From: Macrostomum lignano
Taxonomy: Eukaryota
Assembly (NCBI GenBank): GCA_002269645.1
Contig: NIVC01000105.1
Location: 907,992-971,991, forward strand
Length of the DNA stretch: 64,000 nucleotides
Reading direction: 5' to 3'
Shown: positions 13,042 to 60,556 of the stretch, one piece after another
Position numbering within the stretch: position 1 is the stretch's first letter
Layout of the letters: every line of letters starts with the position of its first letter
Notes under the pieces: generated by a model
What the model was told of the DNA's origin: nothing
The model's database searches: none
Seen by the model: only the letters and a program-made list of their open reading frames with translations
Program-made: the position numbers and the translations under genes

Positions 13042-14155
13042 CGATTCCTTAGGGCTGTTTTGGGGTGAGGGCGATTCCTTAGGGCTGTTCTGGGGTGAGG
13101 GCGATTCCTTAGGGCTGTTCTGGGGTGAGGGCGATTCCTTAGGGCTGTTCTGGGGTGAGGGCGATTCCTTAGGGCTGTTCTGGGGTGAGGGCGATTCCTT
13201 AGGGCTGTTCTGGGGTGAGGGCGATTCCTTAGGGATGTTCTGGGTGAGGGCGATTCCTTAGGGCTGTTCTGGGGTGAGGGCGATTCCTTAGGGCTGTTCT
13301 GGGGTGAGGGCGATTCCTTAGGGATGTTCTGGGGTGAGGGCGATTCCTTAGGGCTGTTCTGGGTGAGGGCGATTCCTTAGGGCTGTTCTGGGGTGAGGGC
13401 GATTCCTTAGGGCTGTTTTGGGGTGAGGGCGATTCCTTAGGGCTGTTTTGGGGTGAGGGCGATTCCTTAGGGCTGTTCTGGGGTGAGGGCGATTCCTTAG
13501 GGCTGTTCTGGGGGTGAGGGCGATTCCTTAGGGCTGTTCTGGGGGTGAGGGCGATTTCTTAGGGCTGTTCTGGGGGTGAGGGCAATTCCTTAAGGCTGTT
13601 CTGGGGGGGGGGGTGAGGGCGATTTCTTAGAGCTGTTCTGGGGTGAGGGCGATTCCTTAGGGCTGTTCTGGGGTGAGGGCGATTCCTTAGGGCTGTTTTG
13701 GGGTGAGGGCGATTCCTTAGGGCTGTTCTGGGTGAGGGCGATTCCTTAGGGCTGTTCTGGGGTGAGGGCGATTCCTTAGGGATGTTCTGGGGTGAGGGCG
13801 ATTCCTTAGGGCTGTTCTGGGGTGAGGGCGATTCCTTAGGGCTGTTCTGGGGTGAGGGCGATTCCTTAGGGCTGTTTTGGGGTGAGGGCGATTCCTTAGG
13901 GCTGTTTTGGGGTGAGGGCGATTCCTTAGGGCTGTTCTGGGGTGAGGGCGATTCCTTAGGGCTGTTCTGGGGTGAGGGCGATTCCTTAGGGCTGTTTTGG
14001 GGTAAGGGCGATTCCTTAGGGCTGTTCTGGGGTGAGGGCGATTCCTTAGGGCTGTTCTGGGGTGAGGGCGATTCCTTAGGGCTGTTTTGGGGTGAGGGCG
14101 ATTCCTTAGGGCTGTTCTGGGGTGAAGGCGATTCCTTAGGGCTGTTTTGGGGTGA
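13042..14155. repeat. 30-bp minisatellite (about 37 copies)
   Basis: Unit gattccttagggctgttctggggtgagggc. Confidence 0.95.
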
Positions 14156-45505: not shown

Positions 45506-48441
45506 TCAACAGTGGCTACCGGGAGACGCCACCAAGCTCAGCGACTTTCCCGACTCGATAGCGACATCGCCGGCGCAGAACAGCGACCTGCAAATTGGTT
45601 GCGGTTCTTTGTAGAGTCAAGAGATTTTGGAAGAATATAAATACAATTTTCCAACACCTAGTTTTCAGATCAGGCCTCAACACCCCCCAAGGCTTCAGGT
45701 CAGGCCTCAACACCCCCCAAGGCTTCAGGTCAGGCCTCAACACCCCCCAAGGCTTCAGGTCAGGCCTCAACACCCCCCAAGGCTTCAGGTCAGGCCTCAA
45801 CACCCCACCCCAGGCTTCAGGTCAGGCCTCAACACCCTCACCTCAGGCTTCAGGTCAGGCCTCAACACCCTCACCTCAGGCTTCAGGTCAGGCCTCAACA
45901 CCCTCACCTCAGGCTTCAGGCTAGGCCTCAACACCCTCACCTCAGGCTTCAGGTCAGGCCTCAACACCCCCCAAGGCTTCAGGTCAGGCCTCAACACCCC
46001 CCAAGGCTTCAGGTCAGGCCTCAACACCCCACCCCAGGCTTCAGGTCAGGCCTCAACACCCTCACCTCAGGCTTCAGGTCAGGCCTCAACACCCTCACCT
46101 CAGGCTTCAGGTCAGGCCTCAACACCCTCCCCTCAGGCTTCGGTCAGGCCTCAACACCCTCACCTCAGGCTTCAGGTCAGGCCTCAACACCCTCCCCTCA
46201 GGCTTCGGTCAGGCCTCAACACCCTCACCTCAGGCTTCGGTCAGGCCTCAACACCCTCACCTCAGGCTTCGGTCAGGCCTCAACACCCTCACCTCAGGCT
46301 TCGGTCAGGCCTCAACACCCTCCCCTCAGGCTTCGGTCAGGCCTCAACACCCTCACTTCAGGTTTCAGGTCAGGCCTCAACACCCCCATCTCAGGCTTCG
46401 GTCAGGCCTCAACACCACCCCAGGCTTCGGTCAGGCCTCAACAGCCTCACATCAGGCTTCAGGTCAGGCCTCATCTTCATAGCCTTCAGGGATCAGTCTG
46501 CCAAATAGTTTCCACGCTTATTTATAAAGTGCTCGAAAGCCTCTCACCTCTTCTCCTTAAATCCCTCAACAATCTCCACTCGGTTCACGTGCAGCTTCTG
46601 CTTCAAGATAGCCAAATTCCACCGGTGCTTCCAGGAGACAGTCAGACGCTTCAAATCAAACACCGGGTCAGTTCCGGTCAGCACAATGCTGATTAACTCG
46701 CCAGGCTCCATGTAGGATTTCTCAACGACTGTCAGCTGCGAGCTGCTCTGCCCGTCGGCGCCTTCCAGCGTGAGAAACAGGTCTCCGTACTGCTGTTTGG
46801 CGCTCGACACGCCCGAGATGATTATCTTGGCAAAGTAGTGGTGCACTGCGAATTCAAGGTTCAGTTTCATTACTTTTATTAAAACTCAATCGATTGAATC
46901 GAAACTTCAGATAAATCTAAGCAATAAGGAAGTCAACTCACTCTCGTAAGGCTCATGGCCATCGGTGTCAAGGAACATCTTCACGTTCGTGAGGCCGCTC
47001 GGGTTCCACTCGGCTGCCCGGATGCCCATCTGAGCGCAGCCGGTGATGCCACAGCCGGCGCACTTTCCCGCCTTAAAGTTCTCGTAGGAATCGCAGGGAA
47101 AGGCCTTGTAGTCACCTTGCGCGTGAATCAAGGTGGTGGACACCAGCTGAAGCACTCGCATGTGGTAGCAGGCGACGACCCACTTTGTGCCCTCAACGAT
47201 GCCATTGATGATGATGCCGGTAATGGGATTCTGGGAGCAGTCGGGCTGCTTCTTGCCACCGTTCGGGTAAAAGTCCACGTGACCAACGGGCTGCATGAGT
47301 CCCATTCCGCCCTGAAGCTTGATGCTATTCAGCAGGCTGTCGCCGTCAGTGTGGATGGCATCGACGAATCGAGCGTCTGTGGGGTCGAGCCGGACCTCCG
47401 GGTGCGTGTTCTCGAAGTACGGACCGGCCGGGTCCATGCCGGTAATGCGGCCGAGTCGCCGACTTCCGGTGAGCCTCTCGCCCGCGTATCCGGCGATGTG
47501 CGAGCCGAGGCTGTGGCCGAGAAGGTGGAACTGCTCACGGTTGGCTCCGAACTGGGTCTCCAGCCACATGATGAGCTGGGCGATCAAAGCTCCGACCACG
47601 CGAGTGTTGGCCGTAGCCTGGGTGTAGGGCAGCTGGTTGCCCTTGCTCCAGTCCACCAGCACTACATTGTGGTCTCCGTGCAGCAGCAGAGCTTTTTTCA
47701 TCTCACCCACCCAGGGCACATTTATGTCGTCAACGAAACCGTGAATGACCATCTTAGTTGGCAGTTTCGGGTTGAAGTTGGACTTTTCAATGCTGGCCTT
47801 GTCGCCGTAGCGTAAAATCTGAGGCAACATCGGATTGCGCAGAGTGAACAGCGCGTAAGTCGGTCGGAGGTGGTCGGGGCTCTGCGGCAGCAGTTGAATC
47901 GGCCGGTTCCAAAGGTCGTAAAAGTTTCCACCGGTGCTGAAGCAGCCGAGACCGTCGTAGCAGATCTTTTGTGGGACGAATCCTGGGATTCGGTGGTAAA
48001 CTGTTATTCATTTAGCGTTTCACCCTCGTGTTTGTATGACTTAGGTGTTTTTATTGTCGCCTGGTGTCTCGAAGTGTACTAATACTATTTATTGTTCACC
48101 CAAGAATTGTACCGATTTAGTCGCAATTTACATCTCCAGAACTGTCAGGAGCAAATTGATTGATACTTATGTCAGCATGCTCTTTCCACTATGATTTATT
48201 CTTGGGTCAGGTTATTCAGACTGCTTACTAAAAGCTTGAGCGAGCATAGAAGTATCTCCAAACTCTTGAAAAGAAAATTAGCACCTACAAAAACCTTTAA
48301 TCAGTGGCAAAACTAAGTAGAATATTTTTCGGTCGCGCAACTACGCAATAAATAGAGCTTACTTTTTCCGATAGAATTGGCGTCAATACGGCCTGCAGCT
48401 GAGAACAGCAGCAGAGTGCATCCAAGCATTAAAACCAACAT
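45506..48441 (-). CDS. Pancreatic lipase-related protein A, with PLAT domain (4 exons, 499 aa)
   Basis: Exons 48441-48363 (signal peptide [17 protein letters not shown]), 47982-46942 (IHGF oxyanion loop, GHSLG Ser, GMDPAG Asp, CYH His, full lid), 46845-46548 (PLAT beta-sandwich) and 45587-45506 (SLFCAG...SHC stop). All introns are GT-AG and in phase; total 1500 nt. Confidence 0.9.
45665..46475. repeat. 30/33-bp minisatellite filling the last intron of lipase A
   Basis: Units ggcttcaggtcaggcctcaacaccccccaa and caggcttcaggtcaggcctcaacaccctcacct. Confidence 0.93.
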
Positions 48442-49210
48442 GCTTTCTTCCAGAGTCTTTGTATTTTAAGTTTTATTCCAGAACAAAGCAAAATTTTAGT
48501 GATTTTGTGGCCATGCAGAGCTTTTATTTCAAGGTATGTGGATATCGTCACGTTCACAAATGCATGCAGCTATCTCAACCGACTTTCAGCTCATGTCTCA
48601 CCTGCTGCAGGTCTCATGCAACCGGTTTTGGACTTGCTGACACTTGGCTGTGCGGCTTTTGTACTTGTTGGAACGACATATTGGATTTGAACAAAACACT
48701 TCACGTTCACTCAGTAGAGCACCTGAAATTTCCAAGACTCAATCTATTTGTTAGCTGCCGTCTATCAGCAGTCCCGGCGATTTGTGTGCTGCTACAGCTG
48801 CCAAAGTCTCACAGCGAGTTCGATTCCGCTAATATATTTATTCTGCTTATCGATTGTGGAGCAGTATTACTTCTGCACTTTTTTATTTTCTCCGTGGAAG
48901 ATAAAATTTTTAAATTAGCTGTTACCACAGGTAACAGCTAGCCACACAAAAGTAGTAAAGGTATGACTCGTAGCGATTAAGCTAAGCTAGCTAAAATATC
49001 GATTTAATTCAGTCAGAAAAAACTTAAACAAAAACAAAAATATTTTCTATTAGGCGTTGCAAAAACGGGCACCAAAACTTGTATATATTTTTATAGTCTT
49101 ATTCGATAGTATTGCTATGCAATCAGTTTTATACAATACAGAAAATTTAGGATAATCAACAACACCGATAGGTCTGCTTCAGATCTCTTTTTCCTCGGCC
49201 TGGAGGTGAT

Positions 49211-50524
49211 TTAGCGGGGACCTGTGGAAATGTACGAAGGTTTTTGTTTTACAATTACGATGTTTTACAATTTGACGATGATAGTAACTAAAAATGGATG
49301 ATAAAACCAAGAAACTCACCAGTGCTCTCAAACGGCGCTTTACCAGCAGTGTCCAGGAACATCTTCACGTTGGTGCGGCCGTTCGGGTTCCACTCGTTGG
49401 CTTTGATGCCCATCTGCGCGCAGCCGACGCTACCGCAGCTCGAACACCTGCCGGCCTTGAATTTCTCGTAGGAGTCGCACGGGAAAGCTTTGTAGTTTCC
49501 CTGCTGGTGCTCAATGGTGCTGGTCACCATCGGCAGCACCCGGAGATGGTCGCAGGCAATAGTCCACTTTGTGCCTTCGATAATACCATCAATGATGATG
49601 TTGGTGATGGGGTTCTGCGTGCAGTCCGGCTGCTTTTTACCACCGTTAGCGTAGAAATCCACGTGACCGACCGCCTGCATCATGCCGAAGCCGCCTTTGA
49701 GGGAAATGCTGCTCAGCAGACTGTCGCCGTCAGTGTGGATGGCGTCGACGAATCGAGCGTCCGTGGGGTCGAGCCGGACCTCCGGGTGCGTGTTCTCGAA
49801 GTACGGACCGGCCGGGTCCATGCCGGTGATGCGGCCGAGTCGCCGACTTCCGGTGAGCCTCTCGCCCGCGTATCCGGCGATGTGCGAGCCGAGGCTGTGG
49901 CCGAGCAGGTGGAACTGCTCACGGTTGGCTCCGAACTGGGTCTCCAGCCACATGATGAGCTGGGCGATCAGGGCTCCGACCACGCGAGTGTTGGCCGTAG
50001 CCTGGGTGTAGGGCAGCTGGTTTCCATTGCTCCAGTCAACTTGTATCACATTGTAGTCTCCGTGCAGCAGCAGAGCCTTCCTCATGTCGACCATCCAGGC
50101 GACGTCCCCGGGGTCAAGGAAGCCGTGGATGATGAACTTAGTCGGCAGTCTCGGGTTAAAGTTGGAGCCAGTAACGCTGGCCTTGTTGTTGTAGACGATT
50201 CTCTGACCGGCAACGATGTTCCTGCGGGTGTAAAGCGCGAAGATCGGTCGGATGCGGTCGGGGCTCTGCGGCAGCAGTTGAATCGGCCGTCTCCACAGAT
50301 CGTAGAAGTTTCCACCAGTGCTGAAGCAGCCGAGACCGTCGTAGCAGACTTTCATCGGGATGAATCCTGTGGGATAATGTTCAACCAAATCGTCTAAGCA
50401 GCGTCCGCTGACATTAGCAATCTAATAAAGTGAGTAGAAACTTACTTGTCTGCCGGCGCAGATCCATTCCAACTGCCCACTGGTTGCAGAGCGCCAGGAC
50501 GCAGATCAGTGCAAGAACGCGCAT
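49211..50524 (-). CDS. Pancreatic lipase-related protein B, no PLAT domain (3 exons, 378 aa)
   Basis: Exons 50524-50446 (signal MRVLALICVLALC), 50366-49320 (complete catalytic triad and lid) and 49221-49211 (GT CCC CGC TAA after acceptor catttccacag). TATAAATA at 50673-50680; total 1137 nt. Confidence 0.88.
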
Positions 50525-53138
50525 CGCGATTATGAGCTGCTCGTAGTTAAATATTCGTCAAAAGGACCTCCTAACAAGCAGTGCAATTCAAACGATTCTA
50601 ACAAATCCAATTCAACTACTTTTCCTTCAGTTGTTTCAACTGCAGAGTAATTTGAAGTTCCAAGCATCTCAATATTTATAGAAAAGTGAGAAGCTAATTA
50701 CGGTTAAAATATGGCCGCAACTGTTGGGTTCTCAGTTAAATTCGCGTGCATCGGCGGTTCTTCTTTCTTGGAGTTATTTTATCGTTTTTATCAGCCGTGT
50801 GTTAATTTACCTTGACACTTTTATTTGTACTTAATTTCGCCGAGCCTAATTAGTTTCTTTAAAATTAATCAAGCTTAGATAAGCGGTACGGGAAGCATTT
50901 TGTGCGCCAGCACTATCTGTCTCTCGGTTAAAAATGACACTCCCACAATTACGACGTACAATAGAATTTGCAATGCTGAGCTAATCTGTGCTTTGCCACC
51001 TGCTGCCGCCACACCCCTTTGATAATTATATTGAGCTTTTTTACTGAGCCTCGAGATTCGCTCTACCGTAATCCAGTTCCGATCCAGTACAGTTCCGGTT
51101 CAGTTTCAATCCGATTGCGTCTGCCGTACAGATACTCTCTTTAAATCGAACGTCTTTGAAAGATAAATAAGAACGGTTCAAACGTGTTTTAAAATGTTGC
51201 AATTCGTTGAAGTACAAAGAAATTAGTATAGTTGATTCTAGTAAACCGGCTTTGTGACGTCGGCACAAGACTTAATTTTGAATTGATTCAAGACTCAGTC
51301 AATTTCCTCAAGACCAGATAAATATCAAGAATTGATGTCTCCTTTGCAATGCGTTTTAAAAAAGTCTACTTGCATTCATAATAAGCGCCAAACTTGTAGC
51401 TAGGGCTCATGGCTATTCATTAATTATTTTGATTTACACATTGATTGATTTTTAACTACTCATATATAACCGATCAGTTTTATTACAAAAATACCTAATA
51501 AAAATTCCACGCAAATTACGATGTTAAAATCGTTGAGACTCTACATTAACACGATATTTCGTAAGAGAGCTTTACGAGTCAAACGACTGCAGTTAAAGAA
51601 CGAGTCACTAAAATGCACCGGGGGCAAATCTCGGCGGGCAATTCGATATAAAAAGTTTTTTTTCCGTCCGAGTACTACAATATGCTGGATGCGTGTCGAC
51701 TTTCGCCACCTATTTCTACTGGGAGTATATTGATAAGCAACTTTTTCTTCAACGCGTCGTAGTGTTTTAGGAGATGCATGAGTTATTTATGCGTTTCCTT
51801 ACATGAAAGTTCCAATTTAATTTCAAATAAATACTCTCCAAACAGCTTAATATTTACGCTCCTGTTCTTAGCTCGTGAAATCCAGTGGAAAACAAAAACT
51901 CGATTTTCAGGATAAAATGATCAGGGAAAGGAATAACACTGTGACGTTGCCGAATTCGTGATTAATTTTCTTGACTTAAGATTTTTGAAATTATTTTCCT
52001 TTGTGTTGTTATCAGTATTATCTAATCATATTAGAAAATGCTGTCGATTATTTTTAGTTCATTGCTTACGTTTATTTTACTGCATCTCTAAATTATGACA
52101 CAAGAACGACCAACTTATAGACGTACAACTTTTTTCTATTTACGCGTACATTTGTGTACGCTGGCAGTGCCTTGCAGTTTCGCAGTACAGTGTTCAATTG
52201 CAGTATTCGTCTTACGAGCCAGGACAGCTCCAGTGAATTTTAATTCGGGATGAACCTTTAGTCATACATTTTTTTTTCGAATATTATCGCACCAAATATC
52301 TTTCGTAAAAATCGCACAACTGCAAGTGCCGGCGAGTTGACCAGAAAATTATAATTATAGTCCAACCGTTGGTTTAGCAAAGTCGTTCTAAACTAATCAG
52401 TCTTCAAAACACATGTTTGATGACGCAAGGAATCAAATAATTAATGAATTTTTACCGCACGTCCCAAATAAATATCGCGTATTTATAACTCAACCATCGT
52501 TTTTAAGTCATAACACTACAGCGCCGGATGAAAAAACTTGCAGATGAATTTCTCGTGTTCATTCGTTTTTTATTTAAATGAATAAATATAAGACATGCAG
52601 AAGCGCCTATGAAAGCTAAAGGAAAAAATATTTTCCTCAGTATTTATTTCAATAAAAAAGTTTTTCTATGTAAAAAATGTTTTTCCTATTCTTGCACTTA
52701 TAATTAGCTTATCAAAACTTTGCACTAAAGCAAATCCGCCTATAAACTCAACTCCATGTGGCTAATATCTCAGATTGTAAATTGACATTAACGTTATTTG
52801 AACTACCTTAGGTAGCTGGTAATTTGCACGTTATCTGGTAATTAAGGCTAGCTAGTGGTTTATTGGGATCGCAATGTATGTAAACATTTACGTTGTTGGT
52901 GACAATGGCGTGGTTCTGAACCGAACTAGTGCGCGACGGAACTTTTTCGTATTTTCTTATTGTCTAAAACAATAATCACCTGAAAATTTATGCGATTGTC
53001 TAAAACTTTAATAGGCTGGGTAGGTTTTATTCCTAAATTAATATTCCCATGTGCTGAATATGTAGTCATGTTATACTGCATTTAATTTAAGGAAGAGTTA
53101 TTAATTAATCGTCAAAATCTATCAATCCTACGGAGTAC

Positions 53139-53266
53139 TTTGGCGCCACAGGCACTCCTTTTAGCGCCCTAAAGCAAAACTATTGATTTCCACAAACTGG
53201 TCACAAAGCATCGGCATGTCCTCCATAGCTTTTACTTCCCCCTGTCCCCAGCTGGTGATGCCACTG
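53139..53266. mobile_element. Fragment of the same MITE family as 1069-1453, inverted
   Basis: The reverse complement shares ggacatgcc-atgctttgt, tggaaat...ttttgctt-ag-gcgc-aaaa and a cag-ggc-tc-cca terminus. Confidence 0.6.
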
Positions 53267-53361
53267 AGCCACTGAAAATAGGCCAAAATTTTTTTAGCAA
53301 AAAATTTTCTATTGGGCTGTCCAGCTAAGCTAGCCAGCTACTCACAATTCCCTGCTCGAAA

Positions 53362-53675
53362 AGGACTGTCTCATTGAGTCAGATTTCACTGAGCAAATCC
53401 TCGCAATGCTCATTTGGCGTTCGAGAATTCGATGGAAGAGGCAGACAAAGCGGGACAGAAATTGGAAGATGACTATCGATGGTTGCACTCCAATCTCTGA
53501 TATCATATCCTATTTGATGTATACTAAAATTTCACATTCAATACGTACAATCGAGCGTAAATACTTAATTACACTTTTAAATGCTCTGCAGCAGAAAATT
53601 TTAATTTTGAACTGTTTAAACTGCGGCTGGGCTGACTGAGGTGGGTGATAAACGGAACCACTGGCTCTGACCGAG
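53362..53675. repeat. Interspersed repeat, inverted copy of 29915-30220
   Basis: See 29915-30220. The ORF-track translations share IISYLM...LLN.LQ.K.LILNCLNCGW. Confidence 0.8.
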
Positions 53676-55123
53676 AGCTTCCGTTGTGTATCGATCTATT
53701 AAACACTCTGTCAGCGGTTAGTAACAGTCAGTTCGCCTGCGGTTGAACTCTTCTTTAATATTGTCACAGCAAGCAAAGCAAAAGAAGAGATACATGCGTG
53801 TATGAGCGACATATGTTAACTGCGCACGTTGCAGAAGTAAAAATTGAAGAAAGTGATGTTCCATAACAATGATGTTCATGATGTTCAATGAAAAGTGACA
53901 ATGTACAGTTATTAAAATAAAAAAATTGAATTACATCATCAAAGTTTACCGTGCTCTGGTCTTTCAAAAGCAGTTTCTTTCTTGTGTTGGGGCAAAATCT
54001 GTTCTTGGTCGAAATCGCTATTTTTAGCTCTAAAGAAATCTGTGAGGGGTCTTTTCACTTTTGTTTGTCTACTGGGCTATTCTCAGCATCGATCGAACAC
54101 ATACGCAACCACACTCTCACGACTCTAACAACTCTAACAACTCTAAGTTGTTAAACATGAGAAATTTCTATTGTACACTCTGTTACTTGGAGTGGCCCTC
54201 ACAAACTAAGCCTCAGGCCAATTTTCGATAACGAGCACCAAATAAATGCGGTTTTTTGAGCACGGAGTTCTGGGTGCGTTTCAAAGTTCGCATTGGATTT
54301 TACTTTCACAATTGAGAGATTGATAATTGTAAATCGTGTCATAATCAGGATACTACGCTGGGAAGACACTGTTGTATCTCTAATAGATGTATAATCATCT
54401 ATTTAGCTTAATAATAGATGAGCTTAGCTTAGCTTAATAATCCGCTCAGTCGCGGTGGCCGTTTTCAGTATATTTGCATACGGTTACAGTCACGGGTATA
54501 ATTGTCTATGGCCAAAGCCACACAAATAAGGCTGGGGATACACCTGACACTAGAAAGAGTGAGATTTAGAATAAGTTCAAGACATTGAATATGTGAATGG
54601 CCATGCAGAGCAGAGCGGCTCTAGGGCTTACTGCATGGACACTGCAACCACCATGGATGGTTTTAGAACGACGATGGTACCAAAACATATGCCTTAAATT
54701 TGTTATTTTAGGTCTTGCAGATGCAAAAGACTCGTAAACTATATAATAACTACTGTAACAGTTATTTAGGCGGATATTACAGATTATTATACAGAACTTT
54801 CTTACGAAATATTTAAAGTTTCACTTCCTGCTATGGCCCATCATATAAAATACATTTTAAAAACTTAACAAAAATAACAATGCCAGTACCTGTATTTTTC
54901 AAATAACAAAAAACAGCCGTAAGGTGGTCAAATCGTCGTTTCGTTGTCTTATGCCTGCGCTTATATTTCGATTCGACAACGCACAGCCACCACAACGTGA
55001 AACTACTTAATTATCATCTGTACATTTTAAAGTCAGAAGGACATCTACAATCACGAATTAATATAACTATCTGGTTTACGTCTCTCGTTGTGTCTTCTCG
55101 TCGCTTTGCCGTCGAACAAACCG

Positions 55124-56493
55124 CTAGCGAGGTCCTGGACAAAATTGAAGTGGAATAAACAATTTTATTATTTTCTGTGAGCCTTTTAATTGTACTCCAA
55201 CACTTTACTTAGACGCTGTAGTGTACGTTTTTGCCTACAAATAAAATCACCAGTGCTCTCAAACGGCGCTTTACCAGCAGTGTCAAGGAACATCTTCACG
55301 TTGGTGCGGCCGTTCGGGTTCCACTCGTTGGCCTGGATGCCCATCTGCGCGCAGCCGACACTACCGCAGCTCGAGCATTTTCCAGCCTTGAAGTTCGCGT
55401 AGGAGTCGCAAGGGAAAGCTTTGTAGTTGCCCTGCCGATTCTCGATGGTGCTGGTCACCATCGGCAGAACTCGGAGATGGTCGCAAGAGATGCTCCACTT
55501 GGTGCCTTCGATGACGCCGTCAATAATTATGTTAATGATGGGGTTCTGCGTGCAGTCCGGCTGCTTCTTGCCACCGTTCGGATAAATATCCACGTGACCG
55601 ACCGCCTGCATCATGCCGAAGCCGCCTTTCAACACAACACTACTCAGCAGGCTGTCGCCGTCAGTGTGGATGGCGTCGACGAATCGAGCGTCCGTGGGGT
55701 CGAGCCGGACCTCCGGGTGCGTGTTCTCGAAGTACGGACCGGCCGGGTCCATGCCGGTGATGCGGCCGAGTCGCCGACTTCCAGTGAGCCTCTCGCCCGC
55801 GTATCCGGCGATGTGCGAGCCGAGGCTGTGGCCGAGCAGGTGGAACTGCTCACGGTTGGCTCCGAACTGGGTCTCCAGCCACATGATGAGCTGGGCGATC
55901 AGGGCTCCGACCACGCGAGTGTTGGCCGTAGCCTGGGTGTAGGGCAGCTGGTTGCCCTTGCTCCAATCAAGTTGGATCACATTGTAGTCTCCGTGAAGCA
56001 GCAAAGCTTTCTTCATTTCCACCATCCAGGCGGTTGTGCCAACGTCGAGGAAGCCGTGTATAATGATCTTAGTCGGTAGCCTAGGGTTAAAGTTGGAACC
56101 AGTGACGCTGGCCTTGTTGTTGTAGACGATGTTTTGAGCGGCAACGATGTTCCTGCGGGTGAACAGCGCGTATGTCGGCTGGATGCGGTCGGGGCTCTGC
56201 GGCAGCACCTGCACCGGGCGCTTCAAGACGTCGTAGAAGTTTCCACCAGTGCTGAAGCAGCCGAGACCGTCGTAACAGACTTTCATGGGGATTAATCCTG
56301 AAGTTGATCAAGTTTTTGCAGTGATTTTCGCTTTTGTAATGTTTTGAATCATTTTGCCAGTTTTATTTTTCTAGAAAGGGATAGAGTAAAGTCGTAAATG
56401 CAATTCACTCTTCTGCCTGTGCAGCTCCATGCCGACAGTCAGCTGAACACCAACTGCCAGCACACACGCAAGCAGAAAAAGTCGGATGGCCAT
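55124..56493 (-). CDS. Pancreatic lipase-related protein C, no PLAT domain (3 exons, 380 aa)
   Basis: Exons 56493-56409 (signal MAIRLFLLACVLAVG), 56297-55251 (triad and lid; donor G|GTGATT) and 55134-55124 (GA CCT CGC TAG after acceptor ttttgtccag); total 1143 nt. Confidence 0.87.
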
Positions 56494-58230: not shown

Positions 58231-60556
58231 ATGGAGTGCTCAATGTTCTGCCCCATCACGCTGGTGTTCCTCATCTCCGGCAGCGTCATGGTCGTCCTTG
58301 GCATCTTCACGCATAACTGGGGCTGCGAGAACTACGGAAGTCTGTATAGCGGTGAGAGCTGCCGTCTGGGGTGTGTTTTGCGTGTTTTAAACTGCGTTCT
58401 AAAACCGACTCAAAGTCGGAAATCCCCAATCCCTTGGCAATTAAGGCAATCAAACTGAAATCTCAATGCCTCACAATGAAAACCCTAATGCATCTTAATG
58501 GAAATCCCAATGCCTCCCAATGGAAACCCCAATGCCTCTCAATGTAAAACCCCAATGCCTCCCAATGGAAACCCCAATGCCTCCCAATGGAAACCCCAAT
58601 GCCTCTCAATGGAAATCCCGATGCCTCACAATGGAAATCCCAATGCCTCTCAAATAGAAATCCCAATGCCTCAAAATGGAAACCCCAATGCCTCTCAATG
58701 GGAACCCCAATGCCTACCAATGGAAATCCCGATGCCTCCCAATGGAAATCCCAATGCCTCTCAAATGGAAACCCCAATGCCTCTCAATGGAAATCCCAAT
58801 GCCTCTCAAATGGAAATCCCAATGCCTCTCAATGGAAACCCCAATGCCTCCCAATGAAAACCCCAATGCCTCTCAAATGGAAATCCCGATGCCTCACAAT
58901 GGAAATTCCAATGACTGTCAATGGAAATCCCAATGCCTCTCAATGGAAACCCCAATGCCTCCCAATGAAAACCCCAATGCCTCTCAAATGGAAATCCCGA
59001 TGCCTCACAATGGAAATTCCAATGACTGTCAATGGAAATCCCAATGCCTCTCAATGGAAATCCCAATGCCTCTCAATGGAAATCCCAATGCCTCCCAATG
59101 GAAATCCCAATGCCTCTCAATGGAAATCCCGATGCCTCACAATGGAAATTCCAATGCCTCTCAATGGAAATCCCGATGCCTCACAATGGAAATTCCAATG
59201 CCTCACAATGGAAATTCCAATGCCTCTCAATGGAAATCCCGATGCCTCTCAAATGGAAATCCCAATGCCTCCCAATGGAAACCCCAATGCCTCTCAAATG
59301 GAAATCCCGATGCCTCACAATGGAAATCCCGATGCCTCACAATGGAAATTCCAATGCCTCTCAATGGAAACCCCAATGCCTCTCAATGGAAACCCCAATG
59401 CCTCTCAAATGGAAATCCCGATGCCTCACAATGGAAATTCCAATGACTGTCAATGGAAATCCCAATGCCTCTCAATGGAAACCCCAATGCCTCTCAATGG
59501 AAATCCCGATGCCTCCCAATGGAAATCCCAATGCCTCTCAATGGAAATCCCGATGCCTCACAATGGAAATTCCAATGCCTCTCAATGGAAATCCCGATGC
59601 CTCACAATGGAAATTCCAATGCCTCACAATGGAAATTCCAATGCCTCTCAATGGAAATCCCGATGCCTCTCAAATGGAAACCCCAATGCCTCCCAATGGA
59701 AACCCCAATGCCTCTCAAATGGAAATCCCAATGCCTCTCAATGGAAACCCCAATGCCTCTCAATGGAAATCCCGATGCCTCCCAATGGAAATCCCAATGC
59801 CTCTCAATGGAAATCCCGATGCCTCACAATGGAAATTCCAATGCCTCTCAATGGAAATCCCGATGCCTCACAATGGAAATTCCAATGCCTCACAATGGAA
59901 ACTCCAATGCCTCTCAATGGAAACCCCAATGCCTCCCAATGGAAACCCCAATGCCTCTCAAATGGAAACCCCAATGCCTCCCAATGGAAACCCCAATGCC
60001 TCTCAAATGGAAACCCCAATGCCTCCCAATGGAAACCCCAATGCCTCTCAAATGGAAATCCCAATGCCTCTCAATGGAAACCCCAATGCCTCTCAATGGA
60101 AACCCCAATGCCTCTCAATGGAAATCCCAACGCCTCTCAATGGAAATCCCGATGCCTCACAATGGAAATCCCAATGCCTCCCACCAAACAGGCTGCAACG
60201 GTCGCTGGGCGGACCAGAACCAAGCAGGCTATTACGCCAGCAAGGTGATGGTGTTCATCGGGCTGGCCTGCACCCTGCTCGCAATTGTGCTGGAGATGCT
60301 GATATGCTGCATCGAAGCCTGCCGGGTGTCGCGGGTGTTCGCCATCATACGCGGCATTTTCATTATCCTGGCATTCGTCATCCTGATGAGCTCGGTGCTA
60401 ATCATCACCCACCTGATGGGAGGAATCTACAGCTACCTGAGCCTGGCCATGGGCACCGTATTCATTTTGCAAGCGTCTAGCATCATATTCGCCAGGCTGA
60501 CCAACACCATTCACTGCGGAGCTCTGCAGGAGGAGGAGAGACCGTTGAAGAAGTGA
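58231..60556 (+). CDS. Small four-TM claudin/PMP22-like membrane protein (2 exons, 161 aa)
   Basis: Exon 58231-58351 (donor G|GTGAGA) joins exon 60192-60556 (acceptor caaacag) in phase. Four hydrophobic segments; the first loop W-GC-ENYGSLYSGC resembles the claudin W...GLW..C signature. Confidence 0.82.
58463..60182. repeat. 22/23-bp minisatellite filling the intron
   Basis: Unit aatggaaatcccaatgcctctc and variants. Confidence 0.95.

Follow-up and report, generated by a model that had tools for sequence, protein, structure and literature searches.

Only one of three neighbouring lipase genes in the flatworm Macrostomum lignano carries exons for a C-terminal PLAT domain. The three belong to the pancreatic lipase family and lie in tandem on the minus strand of contig NIVC01000105.1, in the order C, B, A, within the 64-kb window that is the whole stretch of DNA analysed here and that matches the contig at 100% identity. 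The question raised by this arrangement is whether B and C are enzymes that have lost the PLAT domain, or catalytic units that borrow it from A.

Layout of the locus and the domains encoded

Gene A encodes 499 amino acids, and B and C encode 378 and 380, respectively, both ending in ...ESTGPR (Table 1). Each gene has a separate first exon with its own ATG and signal-peptide-like sequence, and the N-termini are hydrophobic (10-aa hydropathy 2.7-3.4). The splice and stop coordinates proposed for all three genes in the earlier note on this DNA were reproduced, as were the phase-1 ends of the three catalytic exons, the in-frame join of B or C to the acceptor at 46845, and the intron of about 100 bp followed by an 11-nt coding exon in B and C (98 and 116 nt). 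Gene A is identical to GenBank PAA90690.1, its introns totalling 1436 nt, the same as the GenBank gene span minus the CDS. Gene B, including its mini-exon, is identical to PAA90691.1, where the span of 1314 nt less the CDS of 1137 nt gives 177 nt, equal to the predicted introns of 79 and 98 nt. The stop codon of B lies 770 nt from the ATG of A. Apart from the catalytic exon, the three genes showed no similarity to one another by blastn (word size 7), whether in flanks, introns or first exons, and no duplication boundaries could be placed.

Table 1. Features of the lipase locus, with positions counted from the first letter of the window
Feature	Position	Strand	Description and basis
Gene A exon 1	48363-48441	-	ATG and hydrophobic signal-peptide-like N-terminus; phase-1 end; part of PAA90690.1
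Gene A exon 2	46942-47982	-	1041 nt, entire catalytic lipase domain; phase-1 end; PF00151 E 3e-91
Gene A exon 3, first PLAT exon	46548-46845	-	Starts TG CAC CAC TAC (..M H H Y); tblastn with PLAT tails
Gene A exon 4	45506-45587	-	End of PLAT domain and TGA stop; tblastn with PLAT tails
33-bp minisatellite, 25.5 copies	45664-46473		Fills gene A intron 3
Gene B exon 1	50446-50524	-	ATG and signal-peptide-like N-terminus; phase 1; part of PAA90691.1
Gene B exon 2	49320-50366	-	Catalytic domain, 1047 nt; end ...GAG AGC ACT G/gtgagt, phase 1; PF00151 E 5e-99
Gene B intron 2	49222-49319	-	98 nt, GT..AG; absent from the transcript-derived GenBank model
Gene B terminal exon, coding start	49211-49221	-	GT CCC CGC TAA = (G)PR-stop; proposed vestige of first PLAT exon
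Gene C exon 1	56409-56493	-	ATG and signal-peptide-like N-terminus; phase 1
Gene C exon 2	55251-56297	-	Catalytic domain, 1047 nt; donor G/gtgatt; PF00151 E 1e-98
Gene C terminal exon, coding start	55124-55134	-	GA CCT CGC TAG = (G)PR-stop; copy at duplicate locus L003 GA CCC CGC TAG
Gene-conversion tract, 310 nt	A 47329-47638; B 49713-50022; C 55644-55953	-	Identity in 50-nt windows and dS

The PF00151 scores of A, B and C were 307, 332 and 331 bits, against a curated cut-off of 27 bits. All three contain the triad motifs GHSLG, GMDPA and AC(Y/D)H, the last with its His behind the lid cysteine, and these align with the same motifs of the PLRP2 entry 1w52, the triad of gene A being Ser184/Asp210/His300. 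Each protein has a lid of 24 residues and a β9 loop of 25 residues. Triacylglycerol activity has been linked to a lid of at least 18 residues combined with a β9 loop of more than 15 (PMC7240578), lengths that A, B and C all reach. Judged from these sequence features, the three lipases are probably secreted, and B and C are most likely lid-gated triacylglycerol or broad-specificity lipases that would work without a PLAT domain.

The claim that gene A alone has PLAT exons was borne out by a tblastn search (E ≤ 10) in which seven lipase PLAT tails of flatworm, mollusc and nemertean origin located a single set in the 64 kb, and the mollusc and nemertean tails matched exon 3 of A at E 2e-7 to 5e-5. 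The phmmer alignment of gene A with 1w52 extends as far as residue 480, in line with the assignment of exon 3. A Pfam PLAT search with exon 3 by itself gave no match, and the spliced tail scored 14.9 bits against PF01477 (E 0.045, profile positions 4-102 of 117), below the 23-bit gathering score. In the AlphaFold model of gene A (pLDDT 88.5), the strands of the tail run from 375 to 493, with a block-mean pLDDT of at least 88 except for 78 at residues 451-460. The model matches lipoxygenase PLAT domains over ~120 residues (E ~1e-8, rmsd ~2 Å) and whole two-domain pancreatic lipases over ~465 alignment columns. At the level of the predicted fold the PLAT label is right, the modelled tail being an eight-stranded β-sandwich.

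Gene conversion links A, B and C. Inside the conversion tract the identity is 94-100% per 50-nt window, as compared to ~50-90% (A-B, A-C) and 70-98% (B-C) outside it, and the B-C dS is 0.039 inside versus 0.525 outside. The PLAT-bearing sister A both adjoins the short genes and trades sequence with them.

The mini-exon and the probable loss of the PLAT domain

The window has exactly two occurrences of the motif AGGNCCNCGCTAR, each at a predicted acceptor, versus 0.03 expected; the mini-exon is beyond chance. Across the five B and C copies it shows synonymous differences only (GGT/GGA, CCC/CCT, TAA/TAG). Selection had earlier been proposed from the synonymous codons of the two GPR-stop ends. 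Selection on the peptide GPR itself is weaker than this implied: the corresponding ends in other paralogs are SRG, SLE or SP. The 11-nt coding end is not peculiar to GPR.

Use of the mini-exon of B is already supported by transcripts, since the GenBank annotation of M. lignano was derived solely from RNA-seq transcripts by way of StringTie/TACO, a mapped de novo transcriptome, TBONE and TransDecoder (PMC5730564); the splicing support for B is this deposited transcript-derived model. Two duplicate copies of B (g2 and g3) likewise encode 378 amino acids ending in ESTGPR. A second PLAT-less cluster on another contig (L004) has the 11-nt coding ends GT CGA GGT TAG and GT CTG GAA TAG, and a tblastn search with PLAT tails found no PLAT exon within 22 kb of it. 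Logan mRNA contig L005, from a separate public RNA-seq run, stops just after the catalytic domain (GAG AGT CCC TAG); it includes an AATAAA signal. Together with PAA90691.1 and the two duplicate 378-aa loci, the L004 cluster and the L005 mRNA support the earlier suggestion of a subfamily that has dropped the PLAT domain. In L004, gene 1 has a long intron with a tRNA-like sequence in which ARAGORN detected no tRNA.

The place of the stop codon bears on the origin of the mini-exon. In PLAT-bearing paralogs the PLAT exon follows a phase-1 intron and starts with the pattern NN CAC CAC TAY (TT CAC CAC TAT in the P0004 gene; see Table 1 for A). In B, C and genes 1 and 2 of L004, a phase-1 intron is followed by the 11-nt coding end, and its stop falls where the PLAT exon has this Tyr codon. 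For this reason the mini-exon is most likely what a nonsense mutation left of the first PLAT exon, an idea that draws on its position, its phase, the length of the intron and a match at 6 of 9 bases. The acceptor of the mini-exon resembles the one formerly used by the PLAT exon, so that common descent would explain the shared phase 1. No trace of a decayed PLAT sequence was picked up behind the B and C mini-exons or in L004 by tblastn with PLAT tails (E ≤ 10).

The reading we prefer, with a probability of roughly 0.8, is a tandem of separate secreted lipase genes in which A is the ancestral two-domain enzyme and B and C are PLAT-less through a nonsense-truncated PLAT exon. Gene A would keep the ancestral combination of a catalytic domain and a C-terminal PLAT β-sandwich. 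The ancestral event was most likely a TAY-to-TAR nonsense mutation at the conserved Tyr, the fourth codon of the PLAT exon, after which the downstream PLAT sequence would have decayed while the genes duplicated further. The old domain-boundary intron (phase 1, ~100 nt) would still be spliced in the PLAT-less subfamily, and the exon beyond it would code for three residues and a stop, the remainder being 3' UTR. In a neighbour-joining tree of 227 unconverted columns, the branching among (A, P0004), (B, C) and (P0005/6/9/7) has bootstrap values of 23-38, too low to place B and C either with the other PLAT-less genes or with A and P0004, so it is the shared exon architecture that bears on one versus two PLAT losses.

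The case would represent an apparently clean instance in which one stop codon, early in the first exon of a domain, removed that domain, with the old intron and its acceptor retained as a 'fossil' whose splicing is still required. Natural enzyme pairs that share a catalytic core but differ in the presence of PLAT could be used to probe what the domain adds to a lipase in an animal with no known colipase. The short form of B is already in GenBank in exactly this shape; the finding is correct but ordinary, and its significance beyond annotation is small.

Gene C and alternative transcripts

The GenBank annotation has no model for gene C at either of the two loci that carry it, and C is not found within 10 kb upstream of B at a third duplicate locus. 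Both observations would suit a silent or decaying duplicate, leaving A and B as the only working genes, yet we consider this improbable. Both copies of C have an intact reading frame, with splice sites, triad and mini-exon all preserved, and they differ by 10 synonymous versus 4 non-synonymous changes (dN/dS ~0.12); gene C is under purifying selection. The GenBank set was filtered, with low-expression and repeat-overlapping transcripts taken out (PMC5730564), and the absence of a model for C is thus weak evidence. Its conservation suggests that gene C is expressed and that its mini-exon is used. A full-text literature search for Mlig011289 or Mlig003920 returned no paper, and the three lipases are unmentioned in a paper on M. 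lignano gut genes.

It is very unlikely that the mini-exons are unused and the GPR-stop match incidental, with B and C reading through the intron to ESTGEFLGFIIHF-stop and ESTGDFICRQKRTLQRLSKVLEYN-stop, respectively. Both frames do meet a stop in 13 to 24 codons, which would leave the protein still PLAT-less, and the gtgatt donor of gene C in the window is weaker than the gtgagt found at L003. Nevertheless, at three loci the transcript-derived model of B is spliced and encodes 378 amino acids, the L004 genes are annotated with the same spliced architecture, and no entry of the protein collection exactly matches the 385-aa or the 398-aa read-through form. The tails predicted from read-through are dissimilar between B and C, whereas the mini-exon varies only synonymously, and the excess of the motif over expectation also speaks against an incidental match.

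The earlier note had further raised a variable-constant locus of the UGT1A or protocadherin type, in which read-through splices from 55251 in C or 49320 in B to the PLAT exon at 46845 would give each enzyme a long and a short form. The single PLAT exon set, the common phase 1 that keeps such joins in frame and the short distance between B and A fit this idea, as does the capacity of M. lignano to make multi-gene precursor transcripts, which amount to ~7% of assembled transcripts (PMC5730564). The proposal was not supported by the data, however, and we give it very little credence. B and C each finish in a conserved terminal exon with a stop of its own, and each of the three units has two coding exons before the domain-boundary intron rather than a single donor-only first exon. 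Transcript-derived models at three duplicate loci give a B of at most 378 amino acids and an A that starts from its own ATG, with no B-PLAT or C-PLAT form among them, and the protein collection contains no exact match to a B-PLAT or C-PLAT protein. The same ending occurs in L004, which has no nearby PLAT exon, and the shared phase is accounted for by common descent. Moreover, the same-phase acceptor of A exon 2 lies between the B donor and the PLAT exon, so read-through would more likely yield lipase-lipase fusions, as in UniProt A0A1I8G0Z8, an ab initio model that is a fusion of three genes. Given the frequent multi-gene precursors, rare read-through transcripts of B or C are plausible; the chance that these skip the mini-exon and borrow the PLAT exons of A, or join its catalytic exon, is slim. 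If true, one PLAT set serving three catalytic domains would be a variable-constant arrangement in the making.

Comparison with known systems

The likeness to UGT1A and the clustered protocadherins lies in tandem 5' units with individual starts upstream of a single phase-compatible 3' exon set. Unlike in those loci, the B and C units have their own stop and terminal exon, the units of A, B and C comprise two exons, and the transcript-based annotation treats A and B as separate genes.

Read as separate genes, with the PLAT domain kept in A and lost from B and C, the cluster can be compared with lipases of known structure. Vertebrate pancreatic lipase and PLRP1/2 (PDB 1lpa, 1w52, 2ppl, 2oxe) have the same two-domain fold as the model of gene A (TM 0.85-0.90 over the ~465 columns), and likewise a Ser-Asp-His triad, a lid that is bounded by a disulphide and similar in length, and a C-terminal PLAT domain, whereas B and C share the catalytic domain but are without the C-terminal one. 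The identity to the solved structures is ~32-36%, as measured on gene A. To our knowledge, no colipase has been described in M. lignano.

Vespid venom phospholipase A1 (PDB 4qnn, 300 aa) and the insect neutral lipases are secreted PF00151 enzymes, as B and C are predicted to be, and similarly end right after the catalytic α/β-hydrolase domain. The venom enzymes have short lids and short β9 loops and no triacylglycerol activity (PMC7240578), in contrast to the 24-residue lid and 25-residue β9 loop of B and C. Because PLAT-bearing paralogs lie next door, the loss in M. lignano is distinct from those in arthropods. The human splice variant PS-PLA1 deltaC, whose C-terminal region is truncated and whose substrate use is altered by this (PMC3039968), is, like B and C, a C-terminally shortened enzyme of the pancreatic lipase family; it is an alternative isoform of one gene, whereas the short form of B and C is fixed in separate genes.

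Lipase genes of the array and their domains

A comparison covering 22.9 kb gave 100% identity between the window and Macrostomum lignano contig NIVC01000105.1 (assembly GCA_002269645.1), and the DNA is of animal rather than prokaryotic origin. Genes A, B and C are three paralogs of the pancreatic lipase family, encoded head to tail by the minus strand, and their large exons match Pfam PF00151 with E-values of 3e-91 to 5e-99. The gene models were rebuilt from sequence, and the splice and stop coordinates proposed in an earlier note on this DNA all proved correct. The catalytic exon of each gene has a phase-1 3' end. Antisense open frames of 282-367 aa lie over the catalytic exons (46955-47815, 49294-50397 and 55231-56079, plus strand); they are reflections of the GC-rich coding exons opposite, not genes.

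Coordinates of the lipase genes, the conversion tract and tandem arrays in the window
Feature	Position	Strand	Details
Gene A	exons 48441-48363, 47982-46942, 46845-46548, 45587-45506	minus	499 aa
Gene B	exons 50524-50446, 50366-49320; mini-exon 49221-49211	minus	mini-exon GT CCC CGC TAA; 378 aa, ends ...PFESTGPR
Gene B, intron before mini-exon		minus	98 nt, GT..AG
Gene C	exons 56493-56409, 56297-55251; mini-exon 55134-55124	minus	mini-exon GA CCT CGC TAG; 380 aa, ends ...PFESTGPR
Gene C, intron before mini-exon		minus	116 nt
Conversion tract	A 47329-47638; B 49713-50022; C 55644-55953	minus
Minisatellite filling intron 3 of gene A	45664-46473		33 bp x 25.5 copies
Example tandem arrays	13042-14155, 22670-24088, 25362-26889, 28017-29842, 30222-31814, 58457-60180

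PLAT exons had been attributed to gene A only, in agreement with tblastn searches (E<=10) using the PLAT tails of seven flatworm, mollusc and nemertean lipases, which matched the window at 46845-46548 and 45587-45506 and revealed no further PLAT exons there. The spliced tail of A scored 14.9 bits against Pfam PLAT, under the cut-off of 23, and phmmer aligned A with horse PLRP2 (1w52) from residue 32 through 480. The AlphaFold model of A (37 homologues as input, pLDDT 88.5) contains a beta-sandwich at residues 375-493, and matched whole pancreatic lipases with TM 0.85-0.90 (target-length normalised) over about 465 alignment columns and, separately, lipoxygenase PLAT domains (E about 1e-8, rmsd about 2 Å). 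Judged by the predicted structure, the assignment of the A tail as a PLAT domain holds at the fold level.

The catalytic domain occupies a single exon of ~1.04 kb in A, B and C and likewise, by gene span, in gene 2 of a second PLAT-less lipase cluster on another contig (L004). That of P0004, a PLAT-bearing paralog, is spread over at least three exons (L006 8001-11878), which suggests that intron loss preceded the A/B/C duplications.

PLAT-less ends and their origin

Gene A is identical to GenBank PAA90690.1 (BOX15_Mlig003920g1) and gene B, including the mini-exon (the 11-nt coding start of its terminal exon), to PAA90691.1 (BOX15_Mlig011289g1). The annotated B gene covers 50524-49211, and the difference between its span (1314 nt) and its CDS (1137 nt) equals the sum of the two predicted introns, 79 + 98 nt. 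The GenBank annotation of the assembly was derived solely from RNA-seq, using StringTie/TACO assemblies and a mapped de novo transcriptome, with transcripts cut by trans-splicing and poly(A) data and ORFs taken from TransDecoder (PMC5730564); splicing of the B mini-exon therefore already has transcript support, via the deposited model. Large duplicated blocks are present in the M. lignano genome (PMC5730564), and the duplicate loci on NIVC01000283.1 and NIVC01001298.1 each carry a 378-aa B ending ESTGPR beside a 499-aa A.

GenBank contains no model of gene C at its two loci (NIVC01000105.1 and NIVC01001298.1), and among database proteins C is present only within UniProt A0A1I8G0Z8. Between the copy on NIVC01001298.1, which is intact, and that in the window there are 10 synonymous and 4 non-synonymous differences (dN/dS about 0.12); gene C (55124-56493) is intact and, by this comparison, under purifying selection. 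No C copy was found within 10 kb upstream of B on NIVC01000283.1 (1-10000), where a deletion or a larger spacer could be responsible.

The sequence AGGNCCNCGCTAR was found exactly twice in the 64 kb, both times at the predicted acceptors, against an expectation of 0.03. Nucleotide similarity of B and C beyond the catalytic exon was not detectable, and the mini-exon match thus did not come along with a recently duplicated block of surrounding DNA. In the five copies of B and C, differences in the mini-exon are confined to synonymous sites; on NIVC01001298.1 that of C reads GA CCC CGC TAG and the C donor is GTGAGT. The two proteins of the L004 cluster end ...ESRG and ...ASLE, encoded by the 11-nt ends GT CGA GGT TAG and GT CTG GAA TAG. 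The catalytic exon there ends in phase 1, as in B and C, the intron before the mini-exon measures about 515 nt in gene 1 and about 100 nt in the second gene, and tblastn with the PLAT tails gave no PLAT exon within 22 kb. In an mRNA contig from another public sequencing run (Logan, SRR30276812), the coding end reads GAG AGT CCC TAG and the UTR behind it, about 100 nt long, has an AATAAA signal. With the L004 ends included, what stays constant is the architecture and not the GPR peptide.

Past the same phase-1 intron, the PLAT-bearing genes read TG CAC CAC TAC (A) and TT CAC CAC TAT (P0004), that is NN CAC CAC TAY, and in every 11-nt end the stop thus sits at the position of a conserved Tyr codon of the PLAT exon. 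The CCC CGC TAA of B differs from the CAC CAC TAC of A by one base per codon. The mini-exon acceptor would accordingly be the former PLAT-exon acceptor: a TAY-to-TAR change would have shortened the protein, after which the PLAT sequence downstream would have decayed and the PLAT-less gene would have been duplicated further. A neighbour-joining tree of the unconverted columns does not separate one PLAT loss from two.

Of the two readings originally proposed, a PLAT-less subfamily is supported, B being already deposited as PAA90691.1 and the L004 cluster having the same design. The other, a variable-constant locus of the UGT1A or protocadherin type in which 5' units are joined to shared constant exons, draws on the correct observation that splicing from 49320 or 55251 to 46845 keeps the frame. 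An origin of the mini-exon from the PLAT-exon acceptor would explain this phase compatibility without any shared-exon mechanism. UGT1A-like units are expected to lack a stop of their own and to consist of a single first exon, whereas B and C carry their own stops and are two-exon units. Joins to the constant exons are seen in none of the transcript-derived models at three loci, although short-read assembly could miss rare isoforms, and read-through and PLAT-joined B or C proteins gave zero exact matches in the protein collection. A0A1I8G0Z8 (P0127), a 1157-aa ab initio model covering window positions 45506-56297, does join the catalytic exons of all three genes, in the order C, B, A, and the PLAT exons of A, each donor being spliced to the next acceptor in phase 1. 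This model almost certainly merges separate genes, a fusion made possible by the shared phase. We consider a variable-constant arrangement unsupported and highly improbable.

Gene conversion and repeats

Among A, B and C, a central tract of the catalytic exon, about 310 nt long and spanning the nucleophile elbow and the Asp, has 94-100% identity per 50-nt window, compared with about 50% to 98% outside it. Identity over the whole tract is 98.1-99.4% (six mismatches for A-B, six for A-C and two for B-C), and B-C dS is 0.039 within the tract versus 0.525 outside. This pattern reflects gene conversion between PLAT-bearing and PLAT-less neighbours.

Roughly two dozen long tandem arrays occur in the window (1-64000): minisatellites whose units measure 12-56 bp, two (GATA)n microsatellites and one 272-bp array. 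They account for its strong GC-skew swings. The long intron of L004 gene 1 (about 515 nt) holds a tRNA-like stretch, …GGTTCGATTC… (L004 11660-11740), in which ARAGORN called no tRNA and which may be a SINE insertion.

Likely function and relation to known lipases

Each of the three proteins has a hydrophobic N-terminus, a triad of Ser (GHSLG), Asp (GMDPA) and His (AC[Y/D]H), a 24-residue lid flanked by two cysteines and a 25-residue beta9 loop. By the values quoted for triacylglycerol activity, both the lid and the beta9 loop are long enough, whereas venom phospholipases A1 have short lids (PMC7240578). From these features we infer that B and C are secreted, lid-gated lipases working without PLAT. 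The array holds uncharacterised members of a known lipase family, with an evolutionary footnote.

PLAT-less members of the pancreatic lipase family are well known. A hornet venom PLA1 of 300 aa was one such member among the matches, and short forms of 354-381 aa occur among nemertean and snail homologues. Human PS-PLA1 offers a further parallel: one of its splice forms is truncated at the C-terminus and differs in substrate use (PMC3039968).
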